A stretch of DNA of 64,000 nucleotides from sequence record PP496444.1; one strand, given 5' to 3'. Shown here piece after piece: positions 754-27,715 of the stretch. Under the pieces are notes generated by a model, which was not told the origin of the DNA, made no database searches, and saw nothing but the letters and a program-made list of their open reading frames with translations. The translations under genes and the position numbers were made by a program. Numbering within the stretch: position 1 is the first letter of the stretch; each line of letters starts with the position of its first letter.

Positions 754-3135
754 ATGGCAGCGAAACCACCTGACAAGATTTCGCGACGTAAGCTACAGGA
801 GCTCTTGGATCGGAAGGAGGATCAACTCAAGTCCGATCGCCGTCCCAAGAAGATCATCACCAAGCTCACGTCGTTCGAGAAGGCGAAAGCCGAATCCAGA
901 GACATCACCAAGCCCTATCACAAGGAAGTGACTCTGGATGACATCATGGATCTTCGCGGGATGCTGGGCGGAAGTCGCGCCATGGCCCCGCTGGAAGGTC
1001 AGTTCTTCATGTCACCCGAGGAGGAACAAATCTCGGAACTGGGACTGTCGGAAACGCTGGAGGAAATCTTCTCCAGTGGTATCGGCTTGCCTCCCGACCT
1101 GAAAATCGATGACCGTGACCTGAAAGCGCTGCCCAACGTATTCGAGTGGACTACCTCGAAGATGGGCGCGAAGATGAAGCCGTACGCCCGCCAGTACGAG
1201 GTGATGATCAAGTCCTGCTCTGAATGGTGCCCCCCCTGCACCAAGAAGCGTTGGCCGAAGCACAAGCTAGGTTTCGCGAAGTCGTTCCATTACTCGCCCG
1301 CTCTCCCCGTGGATTTTGACGTAGCCAACATTGACGACTACGTTCAGCACTTGGAGAACGGGCGTTGTCCGTGTTGCAAGAAAAGAAAGTCGGAGCTGGT
1401 GCGTAGCGGTCAGTTGCCTTTGGTCACCGAACTGGATATGTGTCTGGGACAGCGGGCAGGCAAGTCTGCAACTATTTATTCCCTGATCCCCTATCTCATC
1501 CACCGCTGGCTCAAGGTTCCTTCGCCGGTACAGGCATTGGGGCTGCTGGACAACACCCTGCTGTCCGGGGTAGTGGTGGCATTGACCTACGCTAAAGCCA
1601 CGTCCCTGCTCTGGCAACCGATTCACAACGCTATCTCGAATACTGGCTGGTTCAAAGAGTACAACGCACTGCTGAACCACTACCAAGAGTTCTACGGTGA
1701 AGAATTCTTCAAGCTGAAAGACTCGTTCGTGCAGTACGGTCACCGGAATATGATCTTCAGTCCCTCCGGCCCGAACAAGCGTACGCTCCGGGGTGAGACC
1801 CGTATCTGGACCGGCACGGACGAAATCGGTTTCTTCTACCACGGCGACGATGGAGACGACAAGGAACGCGCATCCGCCAACGAGGTATACGTGTCACTGG
1901 GTAACTCCCTGTTCACGGTTAAGAAGGCGGCGGAGACTGCCTTGCTGTCCGGCATGGACGGTATACCGATGACTCTGATGGCGAACATTTCCTCGCCGTC
2001 CAGCTACAAAGACAAGATCATGTCTTTGATCCGTGAGTTTGAGAACGAACCCACCGTCGTGACCATGCACCTGCCTACTTGGGAGTTCAACCCCAAGACC
2101 AGTAAGGGCGACTTCAAGAAGGAATACGCGGCTGATCCTATCAAGGCAGACCGTGACTTCGGGGCTAACCCTCCGATGTCTGAGAACCCTTACCTTCCTG
2201 ACCTCGAACCCATGAAGCGTCAGGTGCTAAAGTCCCAGCGCAACATGGTAGAGTACGAGTACAAGCTGATCAAGGCTACCAACGGTGCACCCCAGCGCTA
2301 TGCCAAGATCAAGCGCCTCCGTGAGTTCATGGATAAGGTGCCCAAGCACGTAATGACCATCGACGCCGGGCACAGCAACAACTCCTTCGCCTTGACCGTT
2401 GGTTACCCTGAGATGCATCGAGGGAAGCTCCGTCTGGTGTGCACGGGTGTGGTGGAAGTGGCGCCGACACACGGGCAGAACACGATCAACTTCACTAAGA
2501 TCGCCAAGGAAATGATCTATCCTTTGATCGAGCACTTCAACGTGGGTCTGGTGGTGACTGACCGCTGGAACTCTTTGAAGCTGCTGCATGACATAGAAGA
2601 CGAGTATGGCATCTTCACATTGCAGTACAGCTTGCGGCCAGATGACTTCAACTTCATCTACGACTACTACATGGATGAAGACTTCGCGTACGCCCGTATC
2701 CCGGTGCCTGAGATTCCCATCGATACGATCATGGACGTAGACATCGATGAGTATCCGAAGTGCTTCGGCCCCGGCAACAAGACCACGGGCAAACCAATGC
2801 CTGTTGCGCACATGATCCACCAATCCCAAACCGTTCAGGTTAATAGCCGGGGCAGTGTGGATAAAGGGCTGGGCCTGACCGATGACATCTTCCGTGCGTT
2901 CAACTTGCTCACCTACGTCTGCGTGGATGAGGAATACGTGGAAGAGTACATGTTGCTGACGGGTTCGGTCGCTGGGGAGAAGCGTGCCATCGGTGCCATG
3001 GCAAGAGGTGGCATCACGCCGGGCAGTCGGGCCAGTGGTGGCAAGGCCATGAGTACCTCGGTCGGTGCGGTTGCGGGGGCGAGCACAGCCTCCGGCAGCG
3101 GTGGAAGCCGTGTATTCAGCCGTACGTCCCGCTAA
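754..3135 (+). CDS. terL: Terminase large subunit
   Basis: Walker A GQRAGKS, Walker B WTGTDEIG, motif III ISSP, RNase H-like nuclease motifs TIDAG..NSFAL and TDDIFRA; upstream of portal/protease genes. Confidence 0.88.
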   Translation: MAAKPPDKISRRKLQELLDRKEDQLKSDRRPKKIITKLTSFEKAKAESRDITKPYHKEVTLDDIMDLRGMLGGSRAMAPLEGQFFMSPEEEQISELGLSETLEEIFSSGIGLPPDLKIDDRDLKALPNVFEWTTSKMGAKMKPYARQYEVMIKSCSEWCPPCTKKRWPKHKLGFAKSFHYSPALPVDFDVANIDDYVQHLENGRCPCCKKRKSELVRSGQLPLVTELDMCLGQRAGKSATIYSLIPYLIHRWLKVPSPVQALGLLDNTLLSGVVVALTYAKATSLLWQPIHNAISNTGWFKEYNALLNHYQEFYGEEFFKLKDSFVQYGHRNMIFSPSGPNKRTLRGETRIWTGTDEIGFFYHGDDGDDKERASANEVYVSLGNSLFTVKKAAETALLSGMDGIPMTLMANISSPSSYKDKIMSLIREFENEPTVVTMHLPTWEFNPKTSKGDFKKEYAADPIKADRDFGANPPMSENPYLPDLEPMKRQVLKSQRNMVEYEYKLIKATNGAPQRYAKIKRLREFMDKVPKHVMTIDAGHSNNSFALTVGYPEMHRGKLRLVCTGVVEVAPTHGQNTINFTKIAKEMIYPLIEHFNVGLVVTDRWNSLKLLHDIEDEYGIFTLQYSLRPDDFNFIYDYYMDEDFAYARIPVPEIPIDTIMDVDIDEYPKCFGPGNKTTGKPMPVAHMIHQSQTVQVNSRGSVDKGLGLTDDIFRAFNLLTYVCVDEEYVEEYMLLTGSVAGEKRAIGAMARGGITPGSRASGGKAMSTSVGAVAGASTASGSGGSRVFSRTSR

Positions 3136-3188
3136 TCCAGACCCTAATTAAAGCCATTAAACGGATAACCCGAGTCGGGAGACCTGAA

Positions 3189-3416
3189 ATGCTGAACGTA
3201 TTCGATTTGATCAAGAGCAAGATGCCTAACGTCCACATTGAAGAAGCCCGTGTGGCGGAGGAACGTGAGATGGCCACGGCGGGATTGAGCAACGACGATC
3301 CTCTGGTATGCCCGGTGTGCAAGCAGCCGACCCAACCGATCATGGGCGGCAATAACGTGCCCATGCTCATCTGCGAGAAAGACCGCGTAGCCATGCCTGT
3401 TCCCGAAGGGGCCTAA
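3189..3416 (+). CDS. Small Zn-binding protein of head cluster
   Basis: 75 aa, CPVC...ICEKD; GGAG SD; coupled to the next gene. Confidence 0.65.
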   Translation: MLNVFDLIKSKMPNVHIEEARVAEEREMATAGLSNDDPLVCPVCKQPTQPIMGGNNVPMLICEKDRVAMPVPEGA

Positions 3417-5256: not shown

Positions 5257-7128
5257 ATGAAACACAATCCACAAGTCACGCGCCTTTCCGCCTTGGCTAA
5301 CGCTGGCATCAACGTCAAGTCAGGTTCGCCGGTCGATGTCGTGCACCAGCACACTCGCACTCTGGGCAACAACATCGACAAGCTGAGTCAACCTCGTCAG
5401 TGGGCCATCGCTCACCTGATGAACGAAGCGGCCGATCTGCTGGTTGTCGAAACCGGCACGCTGCAAGACGATTACATCGACTACTTCAAAGGTGCGCTGG
5501 AGAAGTTCGGTGTGTCCTCTCCGGCGGAACTGTCCCAAGACAAGGCTTCCGAGTTCTTCAACTGGATTAGCGCCAACTGGAAGAAAGGTGTCGGCCCGAA
5601 AGCCGAAGCCAGCGTGGAGACTGCGGCAACCAACTACTGGGGTTTGAAGAATCCCAAGCACAAGGCTGACGACTATATCAACCTCGGCAAGAAATACGGC
5701 TTCACGTTCGACGGCTTCGACGAATCAGGCATTGCCACGTGGAAGACCACTGGCGCGGAAAGGACTTCGGTCTTCAAAGCTGCACTGGACAAGCTCGAAG
5801 GCAAGAAAGTAGAGCTGATCAAGGAAGAAGCCGGTGTTGAAGTAGCGGCTACCCACTACTGGGGACTTAAGAACCCCAAACACAAGGCTGACGAGTATAT
5901 CAGCCTCGGTAAGAAGTACGGCTTCGTGTTTGACGGTTTCGATGAGTCTGGAATCGCTACATGGAAGACTACAGGGGCGGAGAGACCAGGTCCGTTCCAA
6001 GCCGCGTTGAACAAGCTGGAAGGCAAAAAGGTAGATCTCGTCAAGGAGGAAGCCAGTGTTGAAACCGCCAGCCAGTTCTCCTTCGTCAAAGTATCGCAGG
6101 AAGGTCGTACGTATCGACTGGAAGCGTCGGACAAAGGCAACTTCAGATCGATCATGATCTGGAAGGGTGGCATGTGGGCCAAGCCGGGTCCGGGTGAAGA
6201 GTTCAAGGAAAAAGAACCACATCGCATGCTGGGCGAACTGCGTACCCCGAACGGTGCAGAGCTGGCTACCCTCATGTTGCCTGAGACTCCAGTGGCAAGC
6301 ATGGAAGAGATGGCCGAGTTGTTCAGCCAGATGGGTATCGAGGAAAGCGAGATCCGTCGCTTCTACGGGGGTGGCCCAGAGTGGAACGACCGTAGCGTCT
6401 ACGATGGCGACATCCCGAGCGTATCCCCGGTCAACCTCAGCGCGAACCCAACGTACGCCTACACTGACATGCACCCGCTGCGTGCCTACGAGGCGGAAGA
6501 CACCATCCGTATCAACGGTCTGGATGCCACGCTGCAAGCCATCGACAACGGGCAGGCTGTGTTCACGGCTGACGGCGTAGATACCACCACCGTGCCGCTG
6601 GACAACATTGTGGTCGCTGAAGGTGAAGCCTCAGTAGTAGCTACTGCCATGGTATCTCACCGCGTACTGGTCACTGCCGGTCACGAAGACCTGACGCAGT
6701 ACAAATCGCTGCGTCACGACTTCGAGTCTGCTACGGCTAACCACCAAGAGCTGGCTGGCGTCAAGGTCGGACCAGCACTGCAAGCACTCGCCAAGGCTGG
6801 TAACCGTCGCGCTCTGGTACTGGCTCACGCCGGTGTGCAGCGTATCAACGAAGGCCACGCATTGCTCAAAGCCTCCATCGGCTACGGCAAGGAAGCGGCG
6901 ACCGCCAGCGTCATCACAGAGTTGGCTGACCTGAACAACCTGTGTGGCAAGGATCAAGTATCGCCGCAAGACGTGATCGATTCCGCGCCGGTGGTCACCC
7001 ATCTGAAGCAGGGTGAGTTCAAGGAAGACATGCCGGACACGGTTGACCCTTCGGACTTCGAGCTGAACGACACGCAAGCCGAACAGGCGTCCACGCGCAA
7101 GAGCCGCTTCCCTAGCCGCAAGCGCTAA
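5257..7128 (+). CDS. Putative internal head protein with two 74-aa tandem repeats
   Basis: 623 aa between portal and protease; repeats start 5605 and 5827; GGAG SD; basic C-terminal tail. Confidence 0.6.
   Translation: MKHNPQVTRLSALANAGINVKSGSPVDVVHQHTRTLGNNIDKLSQPRQWAIAHLMNEAADLLVVETGTLQDDYIDYFKGALEKFGVSSPAELSQDKASEFFNWISANWKKGVGPKAEASVETAATNYWGLKNPKHKADDYINLGKKYGFTFDGFDESGIATWKTTGAERTSVFKAALDKLEGKKVELIKEEAGVEVAATHYWGLKNPKHKADEYISLGKKYGFVFDGFDESGIATWKTTGAERPGPFQAALNKLEGKKVDLVKEEASVETASQFSFVKVSQEGRTYRLEASDKGNFRSIMIWKGGMWAKPGPGEEFKEKEPHRMLGELRTPNGAELATLMLPETPVASMEEMAELFSQMGIEESEIRRFYGGGPEWNDRSVYDGDIPSVSPVNLSANPTYAYTDMHPLRAYEAEDTIRINGLDATLQAIDNGQAVFTADGVDTTTVPLDNIVVAEGEASVVATAMVSHRVLVTAGHEDLTQYKSLRHDFESATANHQELAGVKVGPALQALAKAGNRRALVLAHAGVQRINEGHALLKASIGYGKEAATASVITELADLNNLCGKDQVSPQDVIDSAPVVTHLKQGEFKEDMPDTVDPSDFELNDTQAEQASTRKSRFPSRKR
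5605..6069 (+). repeat. Coding tandem repeat, 222-bp unit x2 plus start of a third
   Basis: gaagcc anchors at 5605, 5827 and 6049; peptide YWGLKNPKHKAD.YI.LGKKYGF.FDGFDESGIATWKTTGAER repeated. Confidence 0.9.
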
Positions 7129-7138
7129 TCATCTGGAC

Positions 7139-7158
7139 AGGGGATCGCAAGGTCCCCT
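7139..7158 (+). other. Intergenic hairpin AGGGGATC-GCAA-GGTCCCCT (repeated element, no U-tract)
   Basis: Related copies at 13849-13864 and 49326-49343. Confidence 0.7.
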
Positions 7159-7174
7159 CATCAGGAACTTGACC

Positions 7175-9379
7175 ATGACAATCAAGAGTGCTACATTCGC
7201 GGCAGCGGAATCGCAAGCTCAAGGCCTAGCCAGCTCGATGGGCTGGCCGGGAGAGGTACTGGACAACGGGGATGGCACTGTCACTCTGTCGCCACCCGAC
7301 GCATGGGACGATGAAGAGAATCCCGGCAAGGTGGCAGCGTCCAAGCTGACCGGCAACAAGGACTGTCACGTCTTCGCCAGCATGGCGGTGCCCAGTGAAG
7401 GTGAGTGGATGGCTGTCGTCATTCAAGGCACCCCGGCACTGGTACTCATCGATCAAGGATCTGGTGAAGGCTGGTTGACCCTACAGGCCCCTGCGGACTT
7501 CGATGTTCCGGAGAGCGTGCTGATTCCTTTCCAACAACGCCTGACCCAAACGGAAACTGCTTCAATGGATATCGAAAAAGATGTAGAACTGGCCGCAGGG
7601 AAGAAAGCTTCCGAGGTTGACGTATTGCTCAAGCTGCGTGCTGAGTACGACAGCATCAAGACGGCTAAGTCCCGTGTAGGTATCTTGCGGGCTAGGAACC
7701 CGACTGAGTACAAGAGGAAAGTAGCTGCTCTTACCAAACGGGAAGAAAAGCTGAAAGCTGCTATCGAGAAGATCGTTCCTTCGGGCCGTATGCCGTCACA
7801 AGAAAGTCTGGTTCGCCGGAAGGCAGCAGAATCAGGCAAGCCCGCAGCACCGGTTAAGCGGGTGAGCAAGGAGGCTAAGGACAAGGCAGCAAAGGACCGA
7901 ATCCACCAGAACATGCTTCAAGACTCCAAACGTACCAGTGATACGGTCAAGAAACATGGGGTCTCAGAGTCGGAAGCTCGTACCCTGCACCGGGGCAAGT
8001 ACCCCAAGTCTTACATGCAGGCTGAAAAGGATCTGGACGAACTTACCCACAAGCTAAAAGATCCTGATCTTACTGACGCGCAGGAAGCCAAGCTGGAAAA
8101 AGAAGTAAAGGAACGTCGTGCGCAACTGAAGGCGAAGAAAAAGAAATACGATGCCGTCCTCAAGGAATCGGAGGAAGCCTCAGTCCAGCCGGATACCCGT
8201 ACACAGGTTCTGGCTAACGTATCCAGCGACCCGGCTGCACCTGAGTATCAGGAAGCCTCGATCACGGGTGTCACGCCGGAAGGTCACATCTCAGTAGCGT
8301 TTGCTGATGGCGACATCGGGGTGTACCAAGGTAAATTCGACCCCGCGGGTCTGATGCCAATCGCGGAAGCGGCAGGCGTTGAAGTTGCCAGCTTCAAACA
8401 CCACACCATGGTTCTGGCCAACGTTGGCACTGCGGCAGCACCTGAATACGCCGAAGCCGAGGTGGTTGGTTCCACTGAGGAAGGCCATCTGGAAGTCGCG
8501 TTTGCCGATGGTGACGTGGGCATCTACCGTTCCATGTTCCACCCTACCGGTATCCTGCCGCTGGGTGTGACTGCCGAGACGGCCAGTGTGCTCATCGAGG
8601 TAGCTGCACGTACGGCAATGACCCCGGAGCAGAAGCTCAAGCGTGCACAGGACCTGCTCAAGCTGCGTACGCTGCACGACAAGTACGAGACCAATACCGA
8701 CGCCCTGAAAGGCAAGAAAGGTCCGGATAACAAAGCCAAGCGTGACAAGAACAACGCTGACAAGGCCAAACTCCGCGCCAAGCTGGACAAGATGGGTGTC
8801 ACGTCCCTGCCGAGCAAAGCTCACCTGCAGCGTACCATCAAGCAGCACAGCGATCTGCCGACCCGCATGCGTGCATCGGACAAGAAGCCAGCTGTCAAGC
8901 CTGCAACCAAGCCGGGGGCGAAACCCGCTGCCAAGAAGTCACCGCTTGAGGAACTGCAAAAGCAGATTAGATTCCTCAAGGTGAAGCTCACGTTGCCGGG
9001 CACCGCTGACTCCAAGGCCAAAGTCAAAGCTGACATCAAGAAGCTTACCGATAAGGTGAGCACGATGAAAGCTGACGCCCCGGCCAAGGATAAACCCGCT
9101 GCCAAGAAGCCTAACTCGGTGGCCGTTCTTCGAGAAGCAGCTTTGGCGTTGGAAGACTATCAAAAGTCTATCAAGGGTAAGAAGCATACCCCCGCTAACA
9201 AGTTAAAGCTGGCAGAGCTCAAAGAGGCCGTAGCGGAAGCTAGAAAGATCGCCAAGGCTGACAACGCCAGGTCGGCAGCACGGGGTAAGGCACAGCACGC
9301 GAAAGATAGTGCCAAGCATGCCAAAGGTCAAAGGGAGTTCGATAAAGACGTTAAACTCGGACTGAAGAGCGTTGACTAA
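7175..9379 (+). CDS. Putative head/core protein with Lys-rich regions and two Tudor-like repeats
   Basis: About 735 aa; repeats at 8201 and 8405 (VLANV..P.Y..A.I...T.EGH..VAFADGD.G.Y); Lys/Ala-rich histone-like segments; directly upstream of protease. Confidence 0.6.
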   Translation: MTIKSATFAAAESQAQGLASSMGWPGEVLDNGDGTVTLSPPDAWDDEENPGKVAASKLTGNKDCHVFASMAVPSEGEWMAVVIQGTPALVLIDQGSGEGWLTLQAPADFDVPESVLIPFQQRLTQTETASMDIEKDVELAAGKKASEVDVLLKLRAEYDSIKTAKSRVGILRARNPTEYKRKVAALTKREEKLKAAIEKIVPSGRMPSQESLVRRKAAESGKPAAPVKRVSKEAKDKAAKDRIHQNMLQDSKRTSDTVKKHGVSESEARTLHRGKYPKSYMQAEKDLDELTHKLKDPDLTDAQEAKLEKEVKERRAQLKAKKKKYDAVLKESEEASVQPDTRTQVLANVSSDPAAPEYQEASITGVTPEGHISVAFADGDIGVYQGKFDPAGLMPIAEAAGVEVASFKHHTMVLANVGTAAAPEYAEAEVVGSTEEGHLEVAFADGDVGIYRSMFHPTGILPLGVTAETASVLIEVAARTAMTPEQKLKRAQDLLKLRTLHDKYETNTDALKGKKGPDNKAKRDKNNADKAKLRAKLDKMGVTSLPSKAHLQRTIKQHSDLPTRMRASDKKPAVKPATKPGAKPAAKKSPLEELQKQIRFLKVKLTLPGTADSKAKVKADIKKLTDKVSTMKADAPAKDKPAAKKPNSVAVLREAALALEDYQKSIKGKKHTPANKLKLAELKEAVAEARKIAKADNARSAARGKAQHAKDSAKHAKGQREFDKDVKLGLKSVD

Positions 9380-17388: not shown

Positions 17389-18498
17389 ATGAGCACTAAG
17401 ACAATGCTGTTGAACAACGTCACCGCCATCGACGTAGGCTTCCTGACCGACCGAGGTGTGTTCGGTGCCAGCGTACGCCCTTCGTTCCTGATCACCGGCG
17501 AGATGTCCGAGGACGAACAGGTGGTCGTGGATTTCTCCACGATCAAGAAGTCCATCAAGGATCTGATCGACCACAAAGAGCTGGGCATCGATCACAAGAC
17601 CATCGTCATCGGTAATTGCCGTAAAGAGTTGTCAGCAGAGGAAGGTGATAACACCATCCGCGTTGTGATGGATGGCCCGGAAGGTGGCGCTGTTTGCATG
17701 GATGCACCTGTTGACGCCTTCGTGTTCTTGGAAGACCGCTGCCCCGGTATCCTCAGCACAGACTGGAACACCAAAGGTAAGCCGCTGGTAGACACGCTGA
17801 CCGTAGGCCGTTATGGTACGCTGGTAGCCGCCGAGCGTTTCGTCATTCCGTTGGTGCAAGAGCTCCTGAGCCGTGAACTGCCCAAGCACTTCTTAGGGCT
17901 GACCGACATCAAGGTGTTCTACAACATGGACGTAACAACGCCCGTGCAACCTAGTCATGTCCGCGCGAACGCCACGTTCAAAGACGCTGACCACAACCCG
18001 CTGTCGGACATGCAAGTAGAAGACAGCATCCGTATCACCTACTCGCACGGCCTGCCGCGCTCCACCAGCTGGGGTTGCCAGAACATCGTGCACGGGCATG
18101 TCAGCGTTGTGACACTTGCTCTTCCCCATGCCCGCGTTGAACGAGCGTCCAAGATCTTGCAGGACATTCGCCATGATCTGGCGGGCAAGTATCTGGTGGC
18201 CGAGCGTGACGTACTCCCGGCAGTAGTTGAACCCGCCGAAGAAGGTGAGGAACAAGCCCAGCCACAAGGTACGTGGGTCGGTTTCGAGTCCATGTCTCGC
18301 GGTCCGTTCAGCCTCTTCCTGCCGTACGGCGACACCCAGATCAAAGTGATGCCCACCGACACCACCGTCGAGAACATCGCCCAGTACATCTGGGACACTC
18401 ACGTCCAACCAGCCATTGAAGCCTACGAACTGACCGACGTATCCATGTACGTCTCGGAAGGCTTGGACAAAGGCGCATTCATCCGACAGCAGGCATGA
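17389..18498 (+). CDS. Two-domain 6-pyruvoyl-tetrahydropterin synthase / QueD-like protein
   Basis: T-fold motifs VVDFSTIKKSIK..IDH, SHGL...GCQNIVHGH and TDTTVENIAQYI, as in the duplicated-PTPS family of Gammaproteobacteria. Confidence 0.75.
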   Translation: MSTKTMLLNNVTAIDVGFLTDRGVFGASVRPSFLITGEMSEDEQVVVDFSTIKKSIKDLIDHKELGIDHKTIVIGNCRKELSAEEGDNTIRVVMDGPEGGAVCMDAPVDAFVFLEDRCPGILSTDWNTKGKPLVDTLTVGRYGTLVAAERFVIPLVQELLSRELPKHFLGLTDIKVFYNMDVTTPVQPSHVRANATFKDADHNPLSDMQVEDSIRITYSHGLPRSTSWGCQNIVHGHVSVVTLALPHARVERASKILQDIRHDLAGKYLVAERDVLPAVVEPAEEGEEQAQPQGTWVGFESMSRGPFSLFLPYGDTQIKVMPTDTTVENIAQYIWDTHVQPAIEAYELTDVSMYVSEGLDKGAFIRQQA

Positions 18499-18888: not shown

Positions 18889-19461
18889 ATGATCATCTTT
18901 CCGCCGGGACTGGACGTAACTCAGAAGGACAGCGCCGAGTGCGCCTACAATCGTCTGATGCTGCAATTGGATTTAGTTGAAGACGATAGCCAGCGTTCCC
19001 TTGAGATGGAGCACATGCTGGCCGAACATCGCCAGCAATTGAACCTGTGGGTTTGCATGTTCATGGAGAAGATCGCGCTGGGGTTGCACTCCAGTCAAGC
19101 GTGGCAAGAGTCCGCGTTGTTGAATATGCAGGCGATTCAGTCCACGCTTGACATCATGGTCGTCTTGGTCGGCAGCATTGACCCCAAGGAAATGATGGAA
19201 GGCGAGTTCCCGGAACGGCGGACAAGATCAGTGGCGCTGGCTCAGTCCTTTGAGAACCAGCGTCGGATGAAGAACTACTTCGTCAACACGGTGGAGAGTT
19301 TCTTTTGCTCTTTGTTCCTCGCCGTGTACCGATACAACTGGCCTTACGTGGGCAAGCTGGCCCCGGAAGATGTGGCGCTGGTGTCCCTGATGGAAGAGGG
19401 TCGCCGCTACATTCGTTCTCTGGAAATCAAGCACACCCAGATGAATAATGCCAAGGCCTGA
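18889..19461 (+). CDS. Hypothetical protein
   Basis: 190-aa ORF, GGAG SD, phage-like codon usage. Confidence 0.65.
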   Translation: MIIFPPGLDVTQKDSAECAYNRLMLQLDLVEDDSQRSLEMEHMLAEHRQQLNLWVCMFMEKIALGLHSSQAWQESALLNMQAIQSTLDIMVVLVGSIDPKEMMEGEFPERRTRSVALAQSFENQRRMKNYFVNTVESFFCSLFLAVYRYNWPYVGKLAPEDVALVSLMEEGRRYIRSLEIKHTQMNNAKA

Positions 19462-19561
19462 CTGAAATTTTCTACCTTTTCTGCTGAATCACCACCCCTT
19501 GGACAAGCTAATTCCAAGCATGTCCAACGAAATATATAACCTGCTTTAGGAGTGCTACCAG

Positions 19562-22477
19562 ATGTATGTAATCCGCCGAGACGGAAGTCGTTCCTTGTTC
19601 CAGAGCGAGAAAATCCGGGCTGCTATCGAGCGAGCCTTCTTCGCGGTCCATGGTCGAAACAGTGAAAATCCTCAGCATACTCTCCGTGTTACAGCGGCAG
19701 TAGAAGCTGGGGTGAAGTCAATGGAAACCACCGGCCAAGAAGACGTACATATCGAAGTCATTCAGGAAGGCGTACTTGCTGCGCTGATCTCTGAAGGCCA
19801 TCCCCGCGTCGAACATGCGTACCGCGTGTATCGAGATGCCCGCACTGCACAGCGTGAGCTGCCCCAGGCTTACACTGACGAGAACGGCACTGCTATCAGC
19901 ATCCCGGCTCTAACCGACATCCTAGCCCGCGTATCCTCCCGTTTGCCAGACCACGTGACTGTTCACTTGGACCTGGTGGCCGTGGCGCGCTCGGCGTTCC
20001 TGCAGATGTTCAACGGTATCAAGGCTGCTGACGTGCACAACGCGCTGATCTTGGCGACCCGTGCGTTCATCGAGCGGGCACCGGAGTACAGCAATCTGGC
20101 AGCGCAACTGCTGCTGGCTCAGACCGCACGTGAAGTGTGGGACCTTGACGCCACCACGTACCCCACCGCCGAGACCTACGCCAAGTGCTACAAGCAGGAG
20201 ACGGTAAGGCTTCTGCTCATCGGCGTGAAGGACGGCATCTACGACCCTACGCTGACCACCGGCGGCAAGCGCGGCTTTGACCTTGAGCTGCTCCGGTCAG
20301 CTATCAAGCCAGAACGCGACCTGCAGTTCGACTACTTGGGTTTGCAGACCCTATACGACCGCTACTTCATCCGCCGCGCTGGGGAAGGCGTTCGTATCGA
20401 AATGCCGCAAACGTTCTTCATGCGCGTGGCAATGGGTCTGGCGATCCTCGAAAGCGATCCGACATCCTCGGCGCTTGAGTTCTACGACGTGCTGTCCACG
20501 TTCGACTACATGGCCTCGACCCCGACCCTGTTCAACGCAGGCACCACGCACAGCCAGATGTCGAGCTGCTACTTGACCACGGTGCCGGACGACCTGCTAG
20601 GCATCTACGGCGCCATCCAAGACAACGCCATGCTGTCCAAGTATGCAGGCGGTCTGGGCAACGACTGGACGCCGGTGCGTGCACTGGGTAGCCTGATCAA
20701 AGGCACCAATGGCCGTTCGCAAGGCGTGGTTCCGTTCCTCAAGGTGGTCAACGACACCGCTGTCGCCGTGAACCAAGGTGGCAAGCGCAAGGGTGCGGTG
20801 TGTGCATACCTTGAAACGTGGCACATGGACATCGAAGAGTTCACCGAGCTGCGCAAGAACACAGGTGATGATCGCCGTCGTACCCACGACATGAACACCG
20901 CCAACTGGGTTCCTGACCTGTTCATGGATCGCCAGATGAAGGATATGGACTGGACCTTGTTCACTCCGTCGGAATGCCCTGATCTGCATGAGCTGTACGG
21001 CGAGGCGTTCAAAGCCCGTTACGAGTTCTACGAAGCCGAAGCTGCCGCTGGCCGTATCAAGACCTTCAAGACCGTGCGCGCCAAGGACTTGTACCGCAAG
21101 ATCCTGTCCATGATCTTTGAAACCGGCCATCCATGGATCACGTTCAAAGATCCGTGCAACATCCGCAGCCCGCAGAGTCACGTCGGCGTCGTGCACAGCT
21201 CCAACCTGTGTACCGAGATCACCCTCAATACGAAGTCCTCCTCACCTGAACTCAAGGATGGCGAGACGGCCGTGTGCAACTTGGGTTCGGTCAACCTGCC
21301 GCAGCACTTGAAATACGTGGGTGAAGGTGGAGTTGCAGTGGACATCGACCACGAGAAGCTGAAACGCACTGTTACTCTGGCCGTGCGTATGCTGGACAAC
21401 GTGATCGACATCAACTTCTACCCGACCAAGGAAGCGAAGAACAGCAACATGCGCCACCGCCCTATCGGTCTGGGTGTCATGGGCTTCCAAGACGTGCTGT
21501 ATGCCAACAACGTAGGCTATGACAGCCCGCACGCCGAGTTCTGGGCCGGTTACTTCCAGCGCTCCATCGCCTTGTACGCCATCAACGCATCGGCTGACCT
21601 GGCTCAACTACGTGGTACGTACGAATCGTTCCAAGGTTCGGACTGGTCGCTGGGTATTCTTCCAGTGCACACGTTCCAAACTCAGATCGATACCCGTCGT
21701 CGTCAGGGCTTCAAGGTTGACGCTGCGCAGAAAGCTCAAGATCTGGCCGACACCATTGGCAAAACCAAGATCAACGGCAAGACACTGGCCGAACTGGAAA
21801 GCTATCTGGCGAACAAGGTCACTCACGGCATGCGTAACAGCAACGTGATGGCGATTGCACCGACGGCCACCATCTCGAACATCGTTGGCGTTACTCAGAG
21901 CATCGAGCCCACGTACGAGCAGGTGTTCGTCAAGGACAACCTGAGCGGCAAGTTCACCGTGATCAACCGATTCTTGGTTGAGCAGCTGCGCAAGCATGGT
22001 CTGTGGGACTCGGACATGCTCGATCAGCTCAAGATGAACAACGGGTCCATTCAGGGCATCCCTGAAATCCCGGAAGGCATCAAGGATACGTATCGCACCG
22101 CGTTCGAGTACGAGCCTGAAGTACTGATCAACTGCGCCATCCAGCGTCAGATCCCTATCGATCAGGCACAGTCGCTCAACCTGTACATGGCGAATCCGTC
22201 GGGCAAGAAGCTGGCGAACACGTACGACTGGTGCTTCGAGACTGGTTTGAAGACCACGTACTACCTCCGCGCCAAGTCTGCTTCGTCCATCGAGAAGTCC
22301 ACCAGTCGTACCGGCGGTGAGCTGAACAGCGTCAAGAACGAGGTGAAGCCTACGGAAGCGGAGCTGCTTGTCCAGAGTGGATTAGCGAGTGCGGCCCCAA
22401 TGCCGGAAGCTGAAGGTGCTGCGTGCTTCCTGCGTCCAGGTGATCCGGGCTGGGAAAGTTGTGATGCCTGTCAATAA
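19562..22477 (+). CDS. nrdA: Class Ia ribonucleotide reductase alpha subunit with tandem ATP cones
   Basis: ATP cone VIRRDG; SSCYL (C225 equivalent), SNLCTEI (N437/C439/E441), VCNLGS (C462), TTYYLR (Y730/Y731), C-terminal CDAC. Confidence 0.97.
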   Translation: MYVIRRDGSRSLFQSEKIRAAIERAFFAVHGRNSENPQHTLRVTAAVEAGVKSMETTGQEDVHIEVIQEGVLAALISEGHPRVEHAYRVYRDARTAQRELPQAYTDENGTAISIPALTDILARVSSRLPDHVTVHLDLVAVARSAFLQMFNGIKAADVHNALILATRAFIERAPEYSNLAAQLLLAQTAREVWDLDATTYPTAETYAKCYKQETVRLLLIGVKDGIYDPTLTTGGKRGFDLELLRSAIKPERDLQFDYLGLQTLYDRYFIRRAGEGVRIEMPQTFFMRVAMGLAILESDPTSSALEFYDVLSTFDYMASTPTLFNAGTTHSQMSSCYLTTVPDDLLGIYGAIQDNAMLSKYAGGLGNDWTPVRALGSLIKGTNGRSQGVVPFLKVVNDTAVAVNQGGKRKGAVCAYLETWHMDIEEFTELRKNTGDDRRRTHDMNTANWVPDLFMDRQMKDMDWTLFTPSECPDLHELYGEAFKARYEFYEAEAAAGRIKTFKTVRAKDLYRKILSMIFETGHPWITFKDPCNIRSPQSHVGVVHSSNLCTEITLNTKSSSPELKDGETAVCNLGSVNLPQHLKYVGEGGVAVDIDHEKLKRTVTLAVRMLDNVIDINFYPTKEAKNSNMRHRPIGLGVMGFQDVLYANNVGYDSPHAEFWAGYFQRSIALYAINASADLAQLRGTYESFQGSDWSLGILPVHTFQTQIDTRRRQGFKVDAAQKAQDLADTIGKTKINGKTLAELESYLANKVTHGMRNSNVMAIAPTATISNIVGVTQSIEPTYEQVFVKDNLSGKFTVINRFLVEQLRKHGLWDSDMLDQLKMNNGSIQGIPEIPEGIKDTYRTAFEYEPEVLINCAIQRQIPIDQAQSLNLYMANPSGKKLANTYDWCFETGLKTTYYLRAKSASSIEKSTSRTGGELNSVKNEVKPTEAELLVQSGLASAAPMPEAEGAACFLRPGDPGWESCDACQ

Positions 22478-22544
22478 AGTGAATGCGACAGGTCAACAAT
22501 GATCAATGGCTAATTCAAAGTAGCAGCCCTACCGAGAGTTAGCC

Positions 22545-23246
22545 ATGAAGACTTATCCACATCCTGTCTTTGCAAGTATCTGCGCCACCCGCTCCGGTCG
22601 TGTATTTTCTCAAGGACGAGAATTGCATGGCGCCACGGACTCATCTGGATATACCCAGATAAACATTCGAGACATAGGTAAGCTTCGACAGAAGCACCGA
22701 ATCGTATATGAGTGCGTAACGGGAAAAGAGTTGCCACCTTACCAGCGTGAAGGCTCTGGTGGATTGGAACTCAACCATGATGACGGGGATAAGACCAACA
22801 ACCGATTCAGCAATCTGGAACTGGTAACCCACCAGTCCAACGTCCAACACTCTTGGCAAGTGCTGGGAAACCGGCAGTCCTTTGCTTCGGGTGAGAAGTG
22901 TGCGATGGCTAAGCTGTCCTATGAAGATGTGGTAAAGATCCTAAAGCTATTAGCTAAAGGAAAGACCGCGTTAGAGATTGGAGGTAAGTTCGGAGTTCAT
23001 CCTTCGAATATAACCAACATCAAGAACGGGAAAGCTTACAAGCCAGAGACGGAACGAGCTGAAAAAGAGTTGGGACTATCAGCCCCCGGAAAGACTATCG
23101 GGGTCACTAAGCACCTGGTCAAACGAGTCCTAAGGCGGCTTAGACTAGGGTGGGCTGGCACAGTCATAGCAGATCATTATAATGTGTCGCAGGCAACAGT
23201 ATCCAGCATCAAAACCGGAAAGTACGATCATCTACTAGCAATGTAA
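22545..23246 (+). mobile_element. Free-standing HNH homing endonuclease with C-terminal HTH repeats
   Basis: KHRIV..ELNHDDGDKTNNRFSNLELVTHQSNVQH; two HTH-like segments; visibly more AT-rich codon usage than neighbours. Confidence 0.85.
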
Positions 23247-23309
23247 ATGATAGGGCGGGCAGGCAACTGTTTCCGCCCTATTTCATCTGTTGCACATGAG
23301 GCTTACCTT

Positions 23310-24095
23310 ATGAGTGTTGTACCCAATCGTGTGTCCCTAGTGGACAAACGCATCTTCAACGGAAAGGCTGATGTCAATGCCTTGCTACCACTTCGTTACC
23401 CGTGGGCCTATGACGCCTACGTGAACGCGAACAAGAACCACTGGCTTCCCGGCGACATCCACCTTGATCTGGATCGAGTCAACCACAAGCATCAAGCGTA
23501 CTGGCCTGCGGTCAGCAACTTCCTGATCAGCGTAGCCCAGCGTGCCGAGATTGATCGCCAGCACATGCTCTTCGTGTACCGGGCCACTACGGCGCCCGAG
23601 GTTCGTCAGCGCTTCCTTCGCATGGGACAGGAAGATACCATCGCCATCATGCTGGCTCAAGACATGGGGCTGGCACTGGAAGACTTCGTCCCGTCTCCCG
23701 AGGTGGTGTTACTGACCTCGGAGAAAGCCTATCTGGCCGGGCTCATGGAACTGATCGAGCGCAAGCTCTTGTCCGTGGCCGAAGGCAAGTACATCCTCGA
23801 AGAAGTACCGGGGGTGCACCAGCATATCCGCAAAGCAGTTGAGAACATACACCGCGACGTGGATTCTCAGTTGGACTTCCTGTTCACCCTGTTGCGTACC
23901 TTCCTCGGCGAATGCGAGACCAACTCCTACCGGGGTTGCAACACGCAGGCGTTCTGGCAGAGCAGCAACCAGTACCACGCCCACCTGAACTCGATTGTTC
24001 TGAACATTCTGACGGGGGCGCCGGTTACTCCCACGCCGTATCAGATGCAGGTGGTCGCGGATAACCAAACGAAAGACACACTGACCTGGGACTGA
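23310..24095 (+). CDS. Degenerate NrdB paralog lacking most diiron ligands and the radical Tyr
   Basis: N-terminal RVSLVDKRIFNG..DVNALLPLRYPWA and NHWLP match proteobacterial NrdB; EEAFHTESY becomes EDTIAIMLA and RDESGH becomes RDVDSQ; ends LTWD; GAGG SD supports ATG 23310. Confidence 0.75.
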   Translation: MSVVPNRVSLVDKRIFNGKADVNALLPLRYPWAYDAYVNANKNHWLPGDIHLDLDRVNHKHQAYWPAVSNFLISVAQRAEIDRQHMLFVYRATTAPEVRQRFLRMGQEDTIAIMLAQDMGLALEDFVPSPEVVLLTSEKAYLAGLMELIERKLLSVAEGKYILEEVPGVHQHIRKAVENIHRDVDSQLDFLFTLLRTFLGECETNSYRGCNTQAFWQSSNQYHAHLNSIVLNILTGAPVTPTPYQMQVVADNQTKDTLTWD

Positions 24096-24097
24096 CT

Positions 24098-25072
24098 ATG
24101 ACCGTTCTTACTCACGTAAACCCGCACGAACATGAGTGGGCGTTGGAAAAGACCTTGGCGTCAAACGCGAACCACTGGTTACCGCAAGAGATTGGACTGT
24201 CTACCGATATCCTGCAATGGAAGACCGGGCAGTTGAGCGACGATGAGATGCGCATGGTCAAGCGTAACCTCGGGTTCTTCTCCACTGCCGACTCACTGGC
24301 CGCGAACAACATCATTCTCGGAACCATACGCCACATCAAGAACAGGAACTGTCGCCACTACCTGTTCCGCCAAGCGTATGAAGAGGCGTTCCACACGGAG
24401 TCCTACGCGTACGTGATCGAGAGCCTCGGTTTGGATCAGGGCGAGATCTTCAACGCCTACAACGAGATCGAATCGATCCGGGCCAAGGATGACTTCCTTC
24501 TTCCGTACATCGAGGTGCTGACCGATCCGGCGTTCCAAGCGGACACCACCGAGAACGTCCAGACCCTGCTCAAGTCGTTGTTCGCGTTCGCGTGCATCAT
24601 GGAAGGCCTGTTCTTCTACGTCGGCTTCGTTCAGATGCTATCGCTGGGCCGTCGCAACAAGCTGCCCGGTTCCTCGCAAGAGTTCCAGTACATCCTGCGT
24701 GACGAGAGCGGCCACTGCAACTTCGGTATCGACCTGATCAACACGATCAAGCGCGAATACCCAGGCGTGTGGACTACGGAACTCCAGAAGGAGTGCACCG
24801 ACATGCTGCGCACTGGCGTTGACCTGGAGCAAGCTTACGCGGTAGACACTCTGCCTAACGGCGTGCTGGGTCTGAACGCTGGCAACACCCGCCAGTATCT
24901 GGAGTTCATCGCTGATCGGCGCTGCATTCAGGTAGGACTGCCGGTGCAGTACAACCAGAACGAGAACCCGTTCCCATGGATGTCGGAAATGGTTGACTTG
25001 AACAATGAAGAGAACTTCTTCGAGAAAAAGGTCACGGCGTACCAGCAAGCCGCCGGCCTGGAGTGGGATTAA
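24098..25072 (+). CDS. nrdB: Class Ia ribonucleotide reductase beta subunit
   Basis: NHWLP, ADS (D84), EEAFHTESY (E115/H118/Y122), IMEG (E204), RDESGH (E238/H241), NFFE..V..YQ..LEWD tail. Confidence 0.96.
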   Translation: MTVLTHVNPHEHEWALEKTLASNANHWLPQEIGLSTDILQWKTGQLSDDEMRMVKRNLGFFSTADSLAANNIILGTIRHIKNRNCRHYLFRQAYEEAFHTESYAYVIESLGLDQGEIFNAYNEIESIRAKDDFLLPYIEVLTDPAFQADTTENVQTLLKSLFAFACIMEGLFFYVGFVQMLSLGRRNKLPGSSQEFQYILRDESGHCNFGIDLINTIKREYPGVWTTELQKECTDMLRTGVDLEQAYAVDTLPNGVLGLNAGNTRQYLEFIADRRCIQVGLPVQYNQNENPFPWMSEMVDLNNEENFFEKKVTAYQQAAGLEWD

Positions 25073-25073
25073 C

Positions 25074-25175
25074 ATGATCTATACATGTCCGAAATGTAGC
25101 AGGCTCCATTCAGATGGAACAAGTAACTTTGAGCTGGTCGTTCTGTGCCGGTATTGCAACCCGCTGAAGGGGTAA
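25074..25175 (+). CDS. 33-aa micro-protein with two CxxC motifs
   Basis: My translation: MIYTCPKCSRLHSDGTSNFELVVLCRYCNPLKG; begins 1 nt after nrdB stop and precedes the terminator. Confidence 0.55.
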   Translation: MIYTCPKCSRLHSDGTSNFELVVLCRYCNPLKG

Positions 25176-25187
25176 TACGGTCCGGTA

Positions 25188-25220
25188 AATAGGGGAGTGA
25201 GCAATCGCTTCCCTATTTTT
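25188..25220 (+). terminator. Rho-independent terminator closing RNR operon
   Basis: aataggggagtga-GCAA-tcgcttccctatt followed by ttt. Confidence 0.75.
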
Positions 25221-25236
25221 ATGTCTGGAGTCTTCT

Positions 25237-25671
25237 ATGAAGCAGCCAGTGTGGGTCACCTTGACCGGCAACACCAAGATGCACAACGTCCCCTACCAGA
25301 TCGATCAGCGCCACGTGCGCGAGTGGCTGCACTGGGGCCTTAAGATGTACCCTATCCAGTTCCCACCGCCACCTGACACGCTGGTAGGTACGCATTCCAT
25401 GTCGTTGAAGTTCTGGGACATGCGCAAGTTCTACTTGTGGAGCGTTAAGTGCACGTGCATCTATACTGGTGAAGTGCACCACCTTGGCGGCGGTTCGTGG
25501 CTGACCAAATCTCAAGCGAAAGTCCTGCAAGACGACGGGATCGAGCTGGGTATCTTGTTGAACACCGTCCCAGAGTGGGTGGTGGATATGGGACTGCTCA
25601 AGCCTTGGTGCTTCTTACAGGACCTGTTCGCGTTCCGTAATCCCTTCCCTCAACGGGAGAAGAACAGATGA
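25237..25671 (+). CDS. Hypothetical protein
   Basis: 144 aa, GGAG SD. Confidence 0.65.
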   Translation: MKQPVWVTLTGNTKMHNVPYQIDQRHVREWLHWGLKMYPIQFPPPPDTLVGTHSMSLKFWDMRKFYLWSVKCTCIYTGEVHHLGGGSWLTKSQAKVLQDDGIELGILLNTVPEWVVDMGLLKPWCFLQDLFAFRNPFPQREKNR

Positions 25672-26310: not shown

Positions 26311-26625
26311 ATGATTGATAATGCTGGTAAGGTTTTCCTTATCCTCGGTGTTCACGGTATCCAGAGGGAGCAGGTACTCTTTGCGGTTGGCACGGAAGCA
26401 GGTGCTACCCTATTGCGGGATACTCTGTTGCAGTATCACGAGACGTATCCATGGCTTGGTCCTGAAGACGTGTACACAGACGAATACGAAGCAAAGCTTG
26501 CGGTGTGGCGAGACAAACATCCGGGCGGGGAGCGGTGTGCCAATATTGACACCTACCTATTGCGTGAAGTTCCTTTAACCACCTCGGCTGAACTGGCCGA
26601 CATTTTGAGTAAGGCAGATGAATGA
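26311..26625 (+). CDS. Hypothetical protein
   Basis: 104 aa; LLQYHETYPW...WRDKHPGG resembles previous ORF. Confidence 0.6.
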   Translation: MIDNAGKVFLILGVHGIQREQVLFAVGTEAGATLLRDTLLQYHETYPWLGPEDVYTDEYEAKLAVWRDKHPGGERCANIDTYLLREVPLTTSAELADILSKADE

Positions 26626-27715
26626 TGATCTGAAAATCACAGAGGTCAACTCTGTGAAGGAATACGATGAGCATGTGGAAGACCTGCTACTGACCTTGTT
26701 GGGGTTGGGCGCTTCCGTCACGCGCAACGACCAAGGTACTCGCAAGCTGGGCGCCACGTCGATCAGCTTCAACCTGCTGTCGATGTACCCCTCGATCCCG
26801 ATGACCACGCTGCGTCCGATCTCGTGGGCCAGTATCCTCGGTGAGACGCTGGGTTTCATCCGGGGCGAGACCAATGTGCAAGCGTTCAAAGACCTAGGCA
26901 CCAACGTCTGGAACGCCAATGCCAAGGAACCAGCGTGGAAGAACGACTTGCTGGCGCCGAACGAAGGCGACCTTGGTCCGATCTACGGTAAGCAGTGGCG
27001 CAAGTGGGAGGACATCAAGCTGGCGGATTATGGCCGTGACCTGTCCAAGTTGGGCTACACCCAGGTGGGCTGGCTGCATGACGGATCGAGTTGGGAGGCT
27101 GTAGGCTCGCCGAATCCCGGTGTATGGCGCCGCGAGGTTGACCAGCTGATGGATGCCTTGAACCGCATCAAGGCCAATCCCAATGACCGTCGCGCTGTCA
27201 TCTCGGCGTGGAATCCCGGTGACATGGACTTCATGGCTCTGCCGCCGTGCCACGTAATGATGCAGCTGACCACGGTGCCTTATGATCAATTCCGGGGCGG
27301 CAGCTACACAGATGGGGTCAATGAATACGAAGCTGACATCGAGGTGGTACCGGAGTTTGTACTCAACCTGGTTGTGACCCAGCGCAGCCAAGACACACTG
27401 CTTGGTCGGGCGTACAACATCCCGGCCTACTCCACTCTGCTTCGCCTGTTCGCTCACCTGCTGGAAATGGTGCCGGGTAATCTGGAGTTCAACGTCGGCG
27501 ACCAGCATCTGTACAGTAACCATGAAGCAGCCGCTGACGAGGTTACCGACCGCCTGAGCCTTGATGAAGATGGGGAAGGCGAAAAGCTGTTCCAACTCTC
27601 CATCGTCGGGGTGAACACGTTTGAAGACCTGGACACCCTCACTGCCGACAACTTCGTTCTGACTCATCAGGTTACACACGATAAGTTGGAATCCGACACC
27701 AAGATGACTGTGTAA
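26618..27715 (+). CDS. thyA: Thymidylate synthase
   Basis: LGPIYGKQWR, RRAVISAWNP, ALPPCH (catalytic Cys), QRSQD, YNI (N177 equivalent), DQHLYSNH. Confidence 0.95.
   Translation: MNDDLKITEVNSVKEYDEHVEDLLLTLLGLGASVTRNDQGTRKLGATSISFNLLSMYPSIPMTTLRPISWASILGETLGFIRGETNVQAFKDLGTNVWNANAKEPAWKNDLLAPNEGDLGPIYGKQWRKWEDIKLADYGRDLSKLGYTQVGWLHDGSSWEAVGSPNPGVWRREVDQLMDALNRIKANPNDRRAVISAWNPGDMDFMALPPCHVMMQLTTVPYDQFRGGSYTDGVNEYEADIEVVPEFVLNLVVTQRSQDTLLGRAYNIPAYSTLLRLFAHLLEMVPGNLEFNVGDQHLYSNHEAAADEVTDRLSLDEDGEGEKLFQLSIVGVNTFEDLDTLTADNFVLTHQVTHDKLESDTKMTV

Follow-up and report, generated by a model that had tools for sequence, protein, structure and literature searches.

The Pseudomonas phage vB_PpuM-Peetri carries, directly upstream of a canonical nrdB gene for the small subunit (R2, or beta) of class I ribonucleotide reductase (RNR), a second gene of R2 type. 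Its product, hereafter called beta-prime, has lost most of its metal ligands, the radical tyrosine and the radical-transfer segment of the tail, and the gene is nonetheless maintained under selection. The DNA analysed, the window, is a stretch of 64,000 nucleotides of record PP496444.1, which corresponds to the 200-kb genome of this phage of P. putida with 100% identity and identical coordinates. Peetri is a jumbo phage of cluster G3 in the CEPEST collection, and RNR is not mentioned in the paper describing the collection. The reading preferred here, to which slightly better than even chances are given, is that beta-prime pairs with the adjacent NrdB in a beta/beta-prime heterodimer similar to yeast Rnr2-Rnr4, and of independent origin.

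A sequence-only reading of this DNA had described the open reading frame (ORF) at 23310-24095 as a degenerate NrdB with a good Shine-Dalgarno sequence, placed next to an intact copy. The ORF is open, frame and coordinates are correct, and the intact nrdB (24098-25072) adjoins it on the 3' side. All the motifs quoted are present, namely the N-terminal RVSLVDKRIFNG, YPWA, NHWLP, TAPEVRQ and the TLTWD end, and a GAGG sequence is located 8 nt 5' of the ATG. The claim that the protein aligns with NrdB over its length holds at the profile and structure level, and fails in pairwise comparison. BLASTP aligns only 29 N-terminal residues of beta-prime to the neighbouring NrdB (E 1e-5), and the protein scores below the cut-offs of both Pfam PF00268 (21 bits vs 33.6) and NCBIfam NF005550 (61 bits vs 309, residues 6-111 only). 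Full-length homology emerges when profiles and structures are compared. Between the beta-prime and partner NrdB families hhalign finds a match of 233 columns and 17% identity, with a probability of 94.6% (E 7e-8), and the beta-prime profile finds the R2c-type structures 6y2n and 1syy in the PDB (E 9e-23) over the first half. The partner NrdB alignment matches 6y2n with E 3e-139. An AlphaFold2 model of beta-prime based on a 62-sequence alignment has a predicted local distance difference test score (pLDDT) of 85 and a predicted template modelling score (pTM) of 0.81, and the top PDB matches obtained with Foldseek are all R2 proteins (1syy: E 1.4e-5, probability 1.00; TM scores 0.6-0.65). An earlier model, built on 5 sequences, had pLDDT 65 and an unmodelled N-terminus, and still retrieved R2 at the top of the Foldseek list (E 0.02). 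By profile comparison and structure prediction, beta-prime has the R2, ferritin-like helical fold. Neither an extra domain nor a new motif was detected, as Pfam, PHROGs and NCBIfam give matches to R2 only; the family as such matches no PHROG family.

Over its first half beta-prime is closer to bacterial NrdBs (E about 1e-35) than to its own partner. Beyond this point the identity to bacterial NrdBs drops to 10-18%, and the second half of the protein is reshaped and shortened. Beta-prime may have arisen by duplication in the phage lineage or been acquired in a second event, the divergence being too great for a reliable placement. A further possibility, that beta-prime and nrdB are the halves of one gene split by an HNH element, was rejected, because the R2 fold is complete in either protein, and because the HNH gene is located 5' of both and is absent from the sister phages.

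The fate of the catalytic site was followed in a MAFFT alignment of 30 sequences, made up of 12 representatives of beta-prime, the 8 NrdBs which partner them and 10 NrdBs of bacteria. In E. coli numbering, the established reference, the metal ligands are Asp84, Glu115, His118, Glu204, Glu238 and His241, and the radical residue is Tyr122. All the 18 true NrdBs, partner and bacterial alike, have the canonical residue at each of these seven positions. In contrast, five of the six metal ligands are replaced in each of the 12 beta-prime representatives, and the radical Tyr is substituted as well. The residues found in beta-prime are the following:
Asp84 equivalent: Ala, Ser or His
His118 equivalent: Ala, Trp, Ser or Cys
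Tyr122 equivalent: Ala, Val, Ile, Phe or Arg
Glu204 equivalent: Met, Leu, Ser, Phe or Cys
Glu238 equivalent: Val, Leu, Thr, Ser, Gly or Arg
His241 equivalent: Gln (11 of 12) or Met (1 of 12)
The Glu115 position is the only ligand position still acidic (10/12). In the Peetri protein the His118 and Tyr122 equivalents are both Ala, Glu238 is changed to Val and His241 to Gln, exactly as initially noticed. The extent of the loss had been understated, since the equivalents of Asp84 and Glu204 and the NFFE...Tyr segment are missing too. Two segments of beta have no counterpart in beta-prime, residues 117-133 and residues 301-310, the latter corresponding to the NFFE stretch ahead of the radical-transfer Tyr. 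The P-x-P-Y sequence of beta-prime aligns with P-F-P-W of true NrdBs, in which the prolines are near-invariant; by manual count, it is followed by about 17 residues, vs 31 after P-F-P-W in beta. The beta-prime tail is thus about 14 residues shorter than that of beta, and has no equivalent of the radical-transfer Tyr356. Other features are retained, such as the equivalents of Trp48 and Asp237, the Glu preceding the ligand Glu, and the L-x-W end. In the Peetri beta protein none of the six ligands is missing, and both the radical Tyr and that of the tail are in place. On the basis of these replacements beta-prime is predicted to be catalytically dead.

The loss of catalytic residues is not accompanied by signs of decay. 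Eight sister phages, about 92% identical to Peetri at the DNA level, keep the beta-prime ORF at about 95% protein identity. The suggestion that the open frame argues against simple decay, and that the ratio of nonsynonymous to synonymous substitutions (dN/dS) be calculated across related phages, proved well founded. By the Nei-Gojobori method, comparison of Peetri with the sister phages gives for beta-prime a dN/dS of 0.10-0.12, similar to that of nrdA (0.11-0.15), nrdB having 0.02-0.05, values of about 0.1 denoting purifying selection on beta-prime, and a binomial test of beta-prime against neutrality gave p 1.7e-13. In comparison with a 59%-identical copy (locus L010), the ratio is 0.30 for beta-prime and 0.22 for nrdB. 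No interruption of the ORF is seen in nine sister genomes, nor in seven further lineages, which range from 60% down to 27% identity to the Peetri copy. Twenty positions are invariant in the family, and 16 of them fall within the first 108 residues. It is therefore strongly supported that beta-prime is maintained under selection and is not a decaying duplicate.

The family is distinct. Nine members were retrieved by a word-index search with E <= 1e-82, true NrdBs, mostly betaproteobacterial, coming next after a gap, at about 1e-35, and eight members were found at <= 1e-30 in an exhaustive hidden Markov model search of 1.84 billion representatives. A scan of IMG/VR with beta-prime patterns gave 29 pattern matches, none of which is a relative. 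A metagenome scan gave 13 matches limited to residues 20-111 or so, which have been taken as ordinary NrdB N-termini. The gene order is constant. Beta-prime is directly 5' of a canonical nrdB in all the eight lineages (the window and loci L010, L011, L012, L028, L029, L030 and L032), and nrdA is found 5' of beta-prime in every locus in which the upstream flank has been assembled. A family-A DNA polymerase gene is located downstream in the longer contigs (L011, L012/L013, L028, L029, L030). In Peetri the start of nrdB follows the beta-prime stop after 2 nt; across lineages the two are separated by 2-4 nt, or overlap by 10 nt. This arrangement implies coupled, near-stoichiometric synthesis of the two proteins. 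The last codons of beta-prime (Trp-Asp, TGGGA) occupy the position expected for the nrdB ribosome-binding site.

The two proteins share the C-terminal end and differ at the N-terminus, as proposed at the outset. In each of the eight pairs beta-prime ends with L-x-W-D, and beta with L-x-W, followed by D or E in seven instances and by the stop in one. The tail of beta-prime has low pLDDT in the AlphaFold2 model, as expected of a flexible tail. The L-x-W end is found also in 6y2n and in the ten bacterial NrdBs sampled, and Acinetobacter-type NrdB ends with A-L-S-W. The motif is therefore generic for this NrdB clade, and gives no evidence of specificity for either the host or the phage NrdA; it plausibly ties beta-prime to an NrdA of this clade. 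In turn, the N-terminal arm, which in bacterial NrdBs precedes the N-H-W motif and is 73% identical among the ten sampled, is conserved in beta-prime (62% identity within the family, 56% to bacterial arms), and is lost or degraded in the partner beta (38% identity to bacterial arms, 30% to beta-prime). Peetri beta begins just a few residues ahead of the Trp-Ala motif, and the match to NCBIfam NF005550 starts at profile position 46 in beta-prime vs 64 in beta. An intact arm is present in each of six viral NrdBs taken from IMG/VR, which share 49-58% identity with Peetri beta and are not preceded by a beta-prime gene. The arm is thus lost in 8/8 NrdBs linked to beta-prime, and in none of the six (0/6) related viral NrdBs which are not. 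The losses are complementary, beta keeping the cofactor site and missing the arm, and beta-prime the reverse.

The initial proposal had left two options, a heterodimeric small subunit or an inhibitor of host NrdA. The evidence collected leans to the former, because of the coupling to nrdB, the complementary losses, and the retention of the arm in viral NrdBs lacking a beta-prime. In the model favoured the phage holoenzyme would be alpha2-beta-beta'. Beta would bring the di-metal/tyrosyl-radical cofactor and the radical-transfer tyrosine, and carry out the chemistry. Beta-prime would bring the N-terminal arm missing from beta, and its tail, a second and shorter L-x-W-D end, would anchor the pair on the second NrdA protomer without mediating radical transfer. 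Beta-prime could also aid the folding of beta or the loading of the cofactor, as reported for yeast R4. Heterodimer formation, tail docking on NrdA, and a role of beta-prime in folding and cofactor assembly are all inferred from sequence features. Several observations weigh against the heterodimer. The notion that beta-prime supplies the arm is itself an inference from the pattern of losses. The eight arm-less betas may descend from one ancestral loss, and should not be counted as eight independent events; the association between arm loss and beta-prime may reflect two or three of them. A generic tail motif suits a competitor equally well, and a regulator of beta would likewise fit with a gene tightly coupled to nrdB. 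In addition, the better model of beta-prime leans on true NrdB sequences present in the 62-sequence alignment.

Tail peptides of R2 inhibit class I RNR, and beta-prime, either alone or as a homodimer, might act as a decoy, filling the tail site of NrdA without delivering a radical, in order to damp or time the phage RNR, or to block the host enzyme. The invariance of the L-x-W-D tail in a family which has lost the radical machinery is in line with such a role, and host NrdA could in principle be bound, as bacterial NrdBs of the same clade share the L-x-W end. Yet a decoy needs the tail alone, and the best conserved part of beta-prime is the folded N-terminal half with its arm. Moreover, phage NrdB has the same tail, hence the phage enzyme would be inhibited too, and a decoy accounts neither for the stoichiometric coupling with nrdB nor for the arm missing from beta. 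A competitor of this sort is considered possible, albeit rather unlikely. Alternatively, beta-prime may capture a host subunit, pairing with host NrdB through the arm and the dimer surface, and either divert it to phage NrdA or poison the host enzyme. The greater similarity of the beta-prime arm to bacterial arms (56%) than is seen for the phage partner (38%), or between beta-prime and the partner remnant (30%), would fit, as would the match of the first half of the protein to bacterial NrdBs at E about 1e-35. Capture of host NrdB is however very improbable, given that a complete phage beta is always found directly 3' and translationally coupled, and that past the first half identity to bacterial NrdBs is just 10-18%. 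The more general notion of a host-directed device, in which beta-prime would pair with host NrdB, or its tail would fill host NrdA, so that the radical capacity is re-routed or shut off for the benefit of the phage enzyme, is held to be improbable. Were it true, the varied degenerate R2 paralogues of several large-phage lineages would represent a general viral takeover of deoxynucleotide synthesis.

The R2 fold could have been re-purposed as a scaffold for a non-catalytic role, for example to tether RNR to proteins of nucleotide metabolism or replication. A thymidylate synthase gene in the window, polA and a clamp-loader-like AAA gene in related loci, and the reshaping and shortening of the second half of beta-prime make the hypothesis conceivable. 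It has a low probability, since no domain or motif has been added, all matches in Pfam, PHROGs and NCBIfam are to R2, and the invariant NrdA-type tail still links the protein to RNR. That beta-prime is a decaying duplicate or a mis-called ORF devoid of function is hardly credible. Family scores under threshold, annotation as hypothetical and an evolution faster than that of nrdB could be taken that way, but dN/dS of about 0.1 (p 1.7e-13), the intact ORF in nine sister genomes and seven lineages, and the 20 invariant positions speak for a functional gene, and decay is regarded as refuted by these conservation data. The beta/beta-prime heterodimer is thus the reading retained.

The organization of the locus in the window is as follows:
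19562-22477, + strand: nrdA, large subunit of class I RNR, with ATP-cone, all-alpha domain and barrel (Pfam PF03477, PF00317, PF02867; NCBIfam NF005544, 1225 bits)
22545-23246, + strand: free-standing HNH endonuclease with helix-turn-helix domains (Pfam HNH_3 and helix-turn-helix families; phrog_59)
23250-23281, + strand: conserved stem-loop 5' of beta-prime, 9-bp core stem and 14-nt loop (70-nt stretch, -25.5 kcal/mol)
23310-24095, + strand: beta-prime, R2-fold paralogue of NrdB, predicted inert, 261 amino acids, annotated as hypothetical protein
24098-25072, + strand: nrdB (beta), canonical class Ia-type, 324 amino acids (Pfam PF00268, 269 bits; NCBIfam NF005550, 506 bits)
25074-25175, + strand: ORF of 33 codons lacking an annotation, with two C-x-x-C pairs, its start 1 nt past the nrdB stop
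25187-25218, + strand: terminator-like hairpin followed by a U-run (consensus scan; -23.9 kcal/mol, z-score -4.0)
26618-27715, + strand: thymidylate synthase, 365 amino acids

The nrdA product is the presumed docking target for the tails of both small subunits. The hairpin at 25187-25218 is the sole terminator-like site detected on the + strand by a consensus scan of the interval 19300-25400, and plausibly closes the transcription unit extending from nrdA to nrdB. The stem-loop at 23250-23281 is present in Peetri and in the spacers of the four sister phages inspected (Lauda, Illi-2, SKa-4 and KoPa-5). The 70-nt stretch including it has a z-score of -3.2, and none of 200 shuffled sequences folds equally well (0/200). 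The element may be a partial terminator, or modulate RNA stability. A longer version of the beta-prime ORF, starting at 23247 and including 63 additional translated nt, has been annotated in KoPa-5 and Voja-6. The stem-loop sits within these 63 nt, which argues for the shorter start at 23310. The small ORF at 25074-25175 has no PHROG match, and is conserved throughout the nine sister phages, a single amino acid being changed.

The HNH gene is a mobile passenger, extraneous to the RNR system. It is missing in eight sister phages, where an 84-nt spacer is found instead, and a 45%-identical homologue resides at the same nrdA/beta-prime junction in the distant locus L029 (7307-8011). This looks like a family of homing endonucleases targeting the junction. 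The C-terminal 40 or so residues of Peetri NrdA, adjacent to the HNH insertion, differ from those of the sister phages, as co-conversion of the flank would produce. The nrdA gene of L029 (3356-7246) encodes a protein of 1296 amino acids, in which a faint match to intein-splicing domains divides the barrel domain; in addition to the downstream HNH gene, it probably carries an intein. Just 5' of the RNR cluster, the + strand at 17389-18498 of the window encodes a 369-amino acid protein, the C-terminal part of which matches the 6-pyruvoyl-tetrahydropterin synthase (QueD-like) domain (E 2e-7); this protein may be related to deazaguanine or pterin chemistry. The thymidylate synthase of the window (365 amino acids) exceeds the 266-position Pfam profile by virtue of about 80 extra residues inside the domain, and ThyA of locus L033 (355 amino acids) is similarly long. 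Genes encoding a eukaryotic-type topoisomerase I domain (type IB, PF01028) are found near polA in relatives of this phage group, namely in L013 (9804-11573) and L028 (16220-16831). In L038, a record of the phage collection (CAKLQH020000007.1, deposited as 'Acinetobacter phage MD-2021a'), the genes surrounding nrdAB are of LysR, PhzF-family and Hcp-like type, and NrdB is of bacterial type (427 amino acids); the contig seems to be of chromosomal and not of phage origin.

The exhaustive search also yielded seven other representatives of degenerate R2-like proteins. Their ligand losses are variable, but the equivalents of Trp48 and Asp237 and an end of L-x-W type are common to all of them. Word-index searches made with these seven proteins are dominated by true NrdBs, and IMG/VR scans with three of them (P0012, P0015 and P0016) gave no matches. 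The protein P0013 is encoded (L035, 855-1874) directly 5' of a canonical NrdB of 480 amino acids (1892-3334) in a 250-kb contig; in this NrdB a low-complexity extension replaces the arm, and 16 extra residues follow L-T-W-D. Similarly, P0012 (L037, 6001-7005) is directly 5' of an NrdB N-terminus (7012-7281) in which the arm is partly degraded. The location of a degenerate copy directly 5' of a canonical nrdB thus recurs for these two proteins, which are much more distant than the Peetri family. P0020, an R2-like protein found in two IMG/VR contigs of 226 and 272 kb (L033, 5001-6071; L034, 5001-6068), keeps a Tyr at the radical position and the Glu115 equivalent; the five remaining ligands, among them the two His, are lost. 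No canonical nrdB was found within 11 kb of it. P0020 fits neither class Ie nor the beta-prime pattern. Its neighbours are thymidylate kinase, thymidylate synthase, NUDIX and NAMPT-like genes.

To our knowledge, bacterial and phage class I RNR small subunits are treated as homodimers. An inert R2 partner subunit is, as far as found in the literature, known only in yeast (Rnr4) and suspected in apicomplexans. No description of a phage or bacterial beta-prime of this kind was found in the full-text library searched, the coverage of which leaves out most subscription journals. If the favoured reading is correct, phage beta-prime would represent a second, independent origin of a small subunit formed by beta and beta-prime and endowed with one cofactor, and the loss of the arm in the partner beta would provide a natural handle on the role of the arm and of the second tail in the holoenzyme. 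There are implications for annotation as well, since beta-prime genes are labelled as hypothetical, or would be labelled as a second nrdB on the basis of weak Pfam matches, and the family is missing from PHROGs. The other degenerate R2 paralogues in large phage contigs suggest that the theme is wider than the Peetri family.

The nearest solved relatives of both beta-prime and beta are bacterial NrdBs of the R2c, or PRK07209, type, such as R2 of Chlamydia trachomatis (1syy) and 6y2n. Shared features are the N-arm motif, a helix with the P-E-C-R-Q motif and, in 6y2n as aligned, the L-x-W-D tail. R2c-type NrdBs are, however, active metal-binding homodimers, and the metal site is missing from beta-prime. 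Where the aligned 6y2n sequence shows Glu and Phe, Asp and Tyr are found in the partner beta, which is therefore class Ia-like. Class Ie NrdF is likewise an R2 protein in which several metal ligands are replaced, but it keeps the radical tyrosine, converted to dihydroxyphenylalanine, and both histidines, and needs NrdI. An assignment of beta-prime to this metal-free class was discarded because the Tyr and both His are replaced, and no flavodoxin-like NrdI was found among the neighbour genes scanned. Beta-prime was also rejected as an R2lox protein, because the ligands are lost and the tail is present, and the NCBIfam R2lox models match beta and not beta-prime.

In apicomplexans a non-canonical R2 (R2_e2 clade) coexists with a canonical R2, and the possibility that the former is a partner of Rnr4 type has been considered (PMC3824934). 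These proteins are eukaryotic and are not encoded in an operon, and their role is as putative as that of beta-prime; none of the searches made revealed a sequence relationship between R2_e2 and the beta-prime family. Yeast R4 lacks iron ligands and is inactive alone, is needed for the correct folding of R2, and forms with it an active beta/beta-prime heterodimer (PMC3267527; PMC3824934). The PDB profile search with the beta-prime family retrieved bacterial R2c-type chains (6y2n, 1syy) and no yeast chain, while the partner beta profile reaches the yeast chains 1jk0_A and 1jk0_B. Phage beta-prime is therefore to be viewed as an analogue of Rnr4 having an independent origin, and not as a relative. 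The parallel with Rnr4 initially drawn thus stands as far as an inert R2 paralogue beside a canonical R2 is concerned, and does not extend to common descent with the fungal protein. Like Rnr4, beta-prime is an R2 paralogue without cofactor ligands, found alongside a canonical R2 and retained under selection. Unlike Rnr4, it is viral, it is encoded in tandem with nrdB and translationally coupled to it, and its partner has reciprocally lost the N-terminal arm. With five of the six ligands replaced, and neither the radical Tyr nor the tail segment for radical transfer left, its losses go beyond those described for the yeast subunit.

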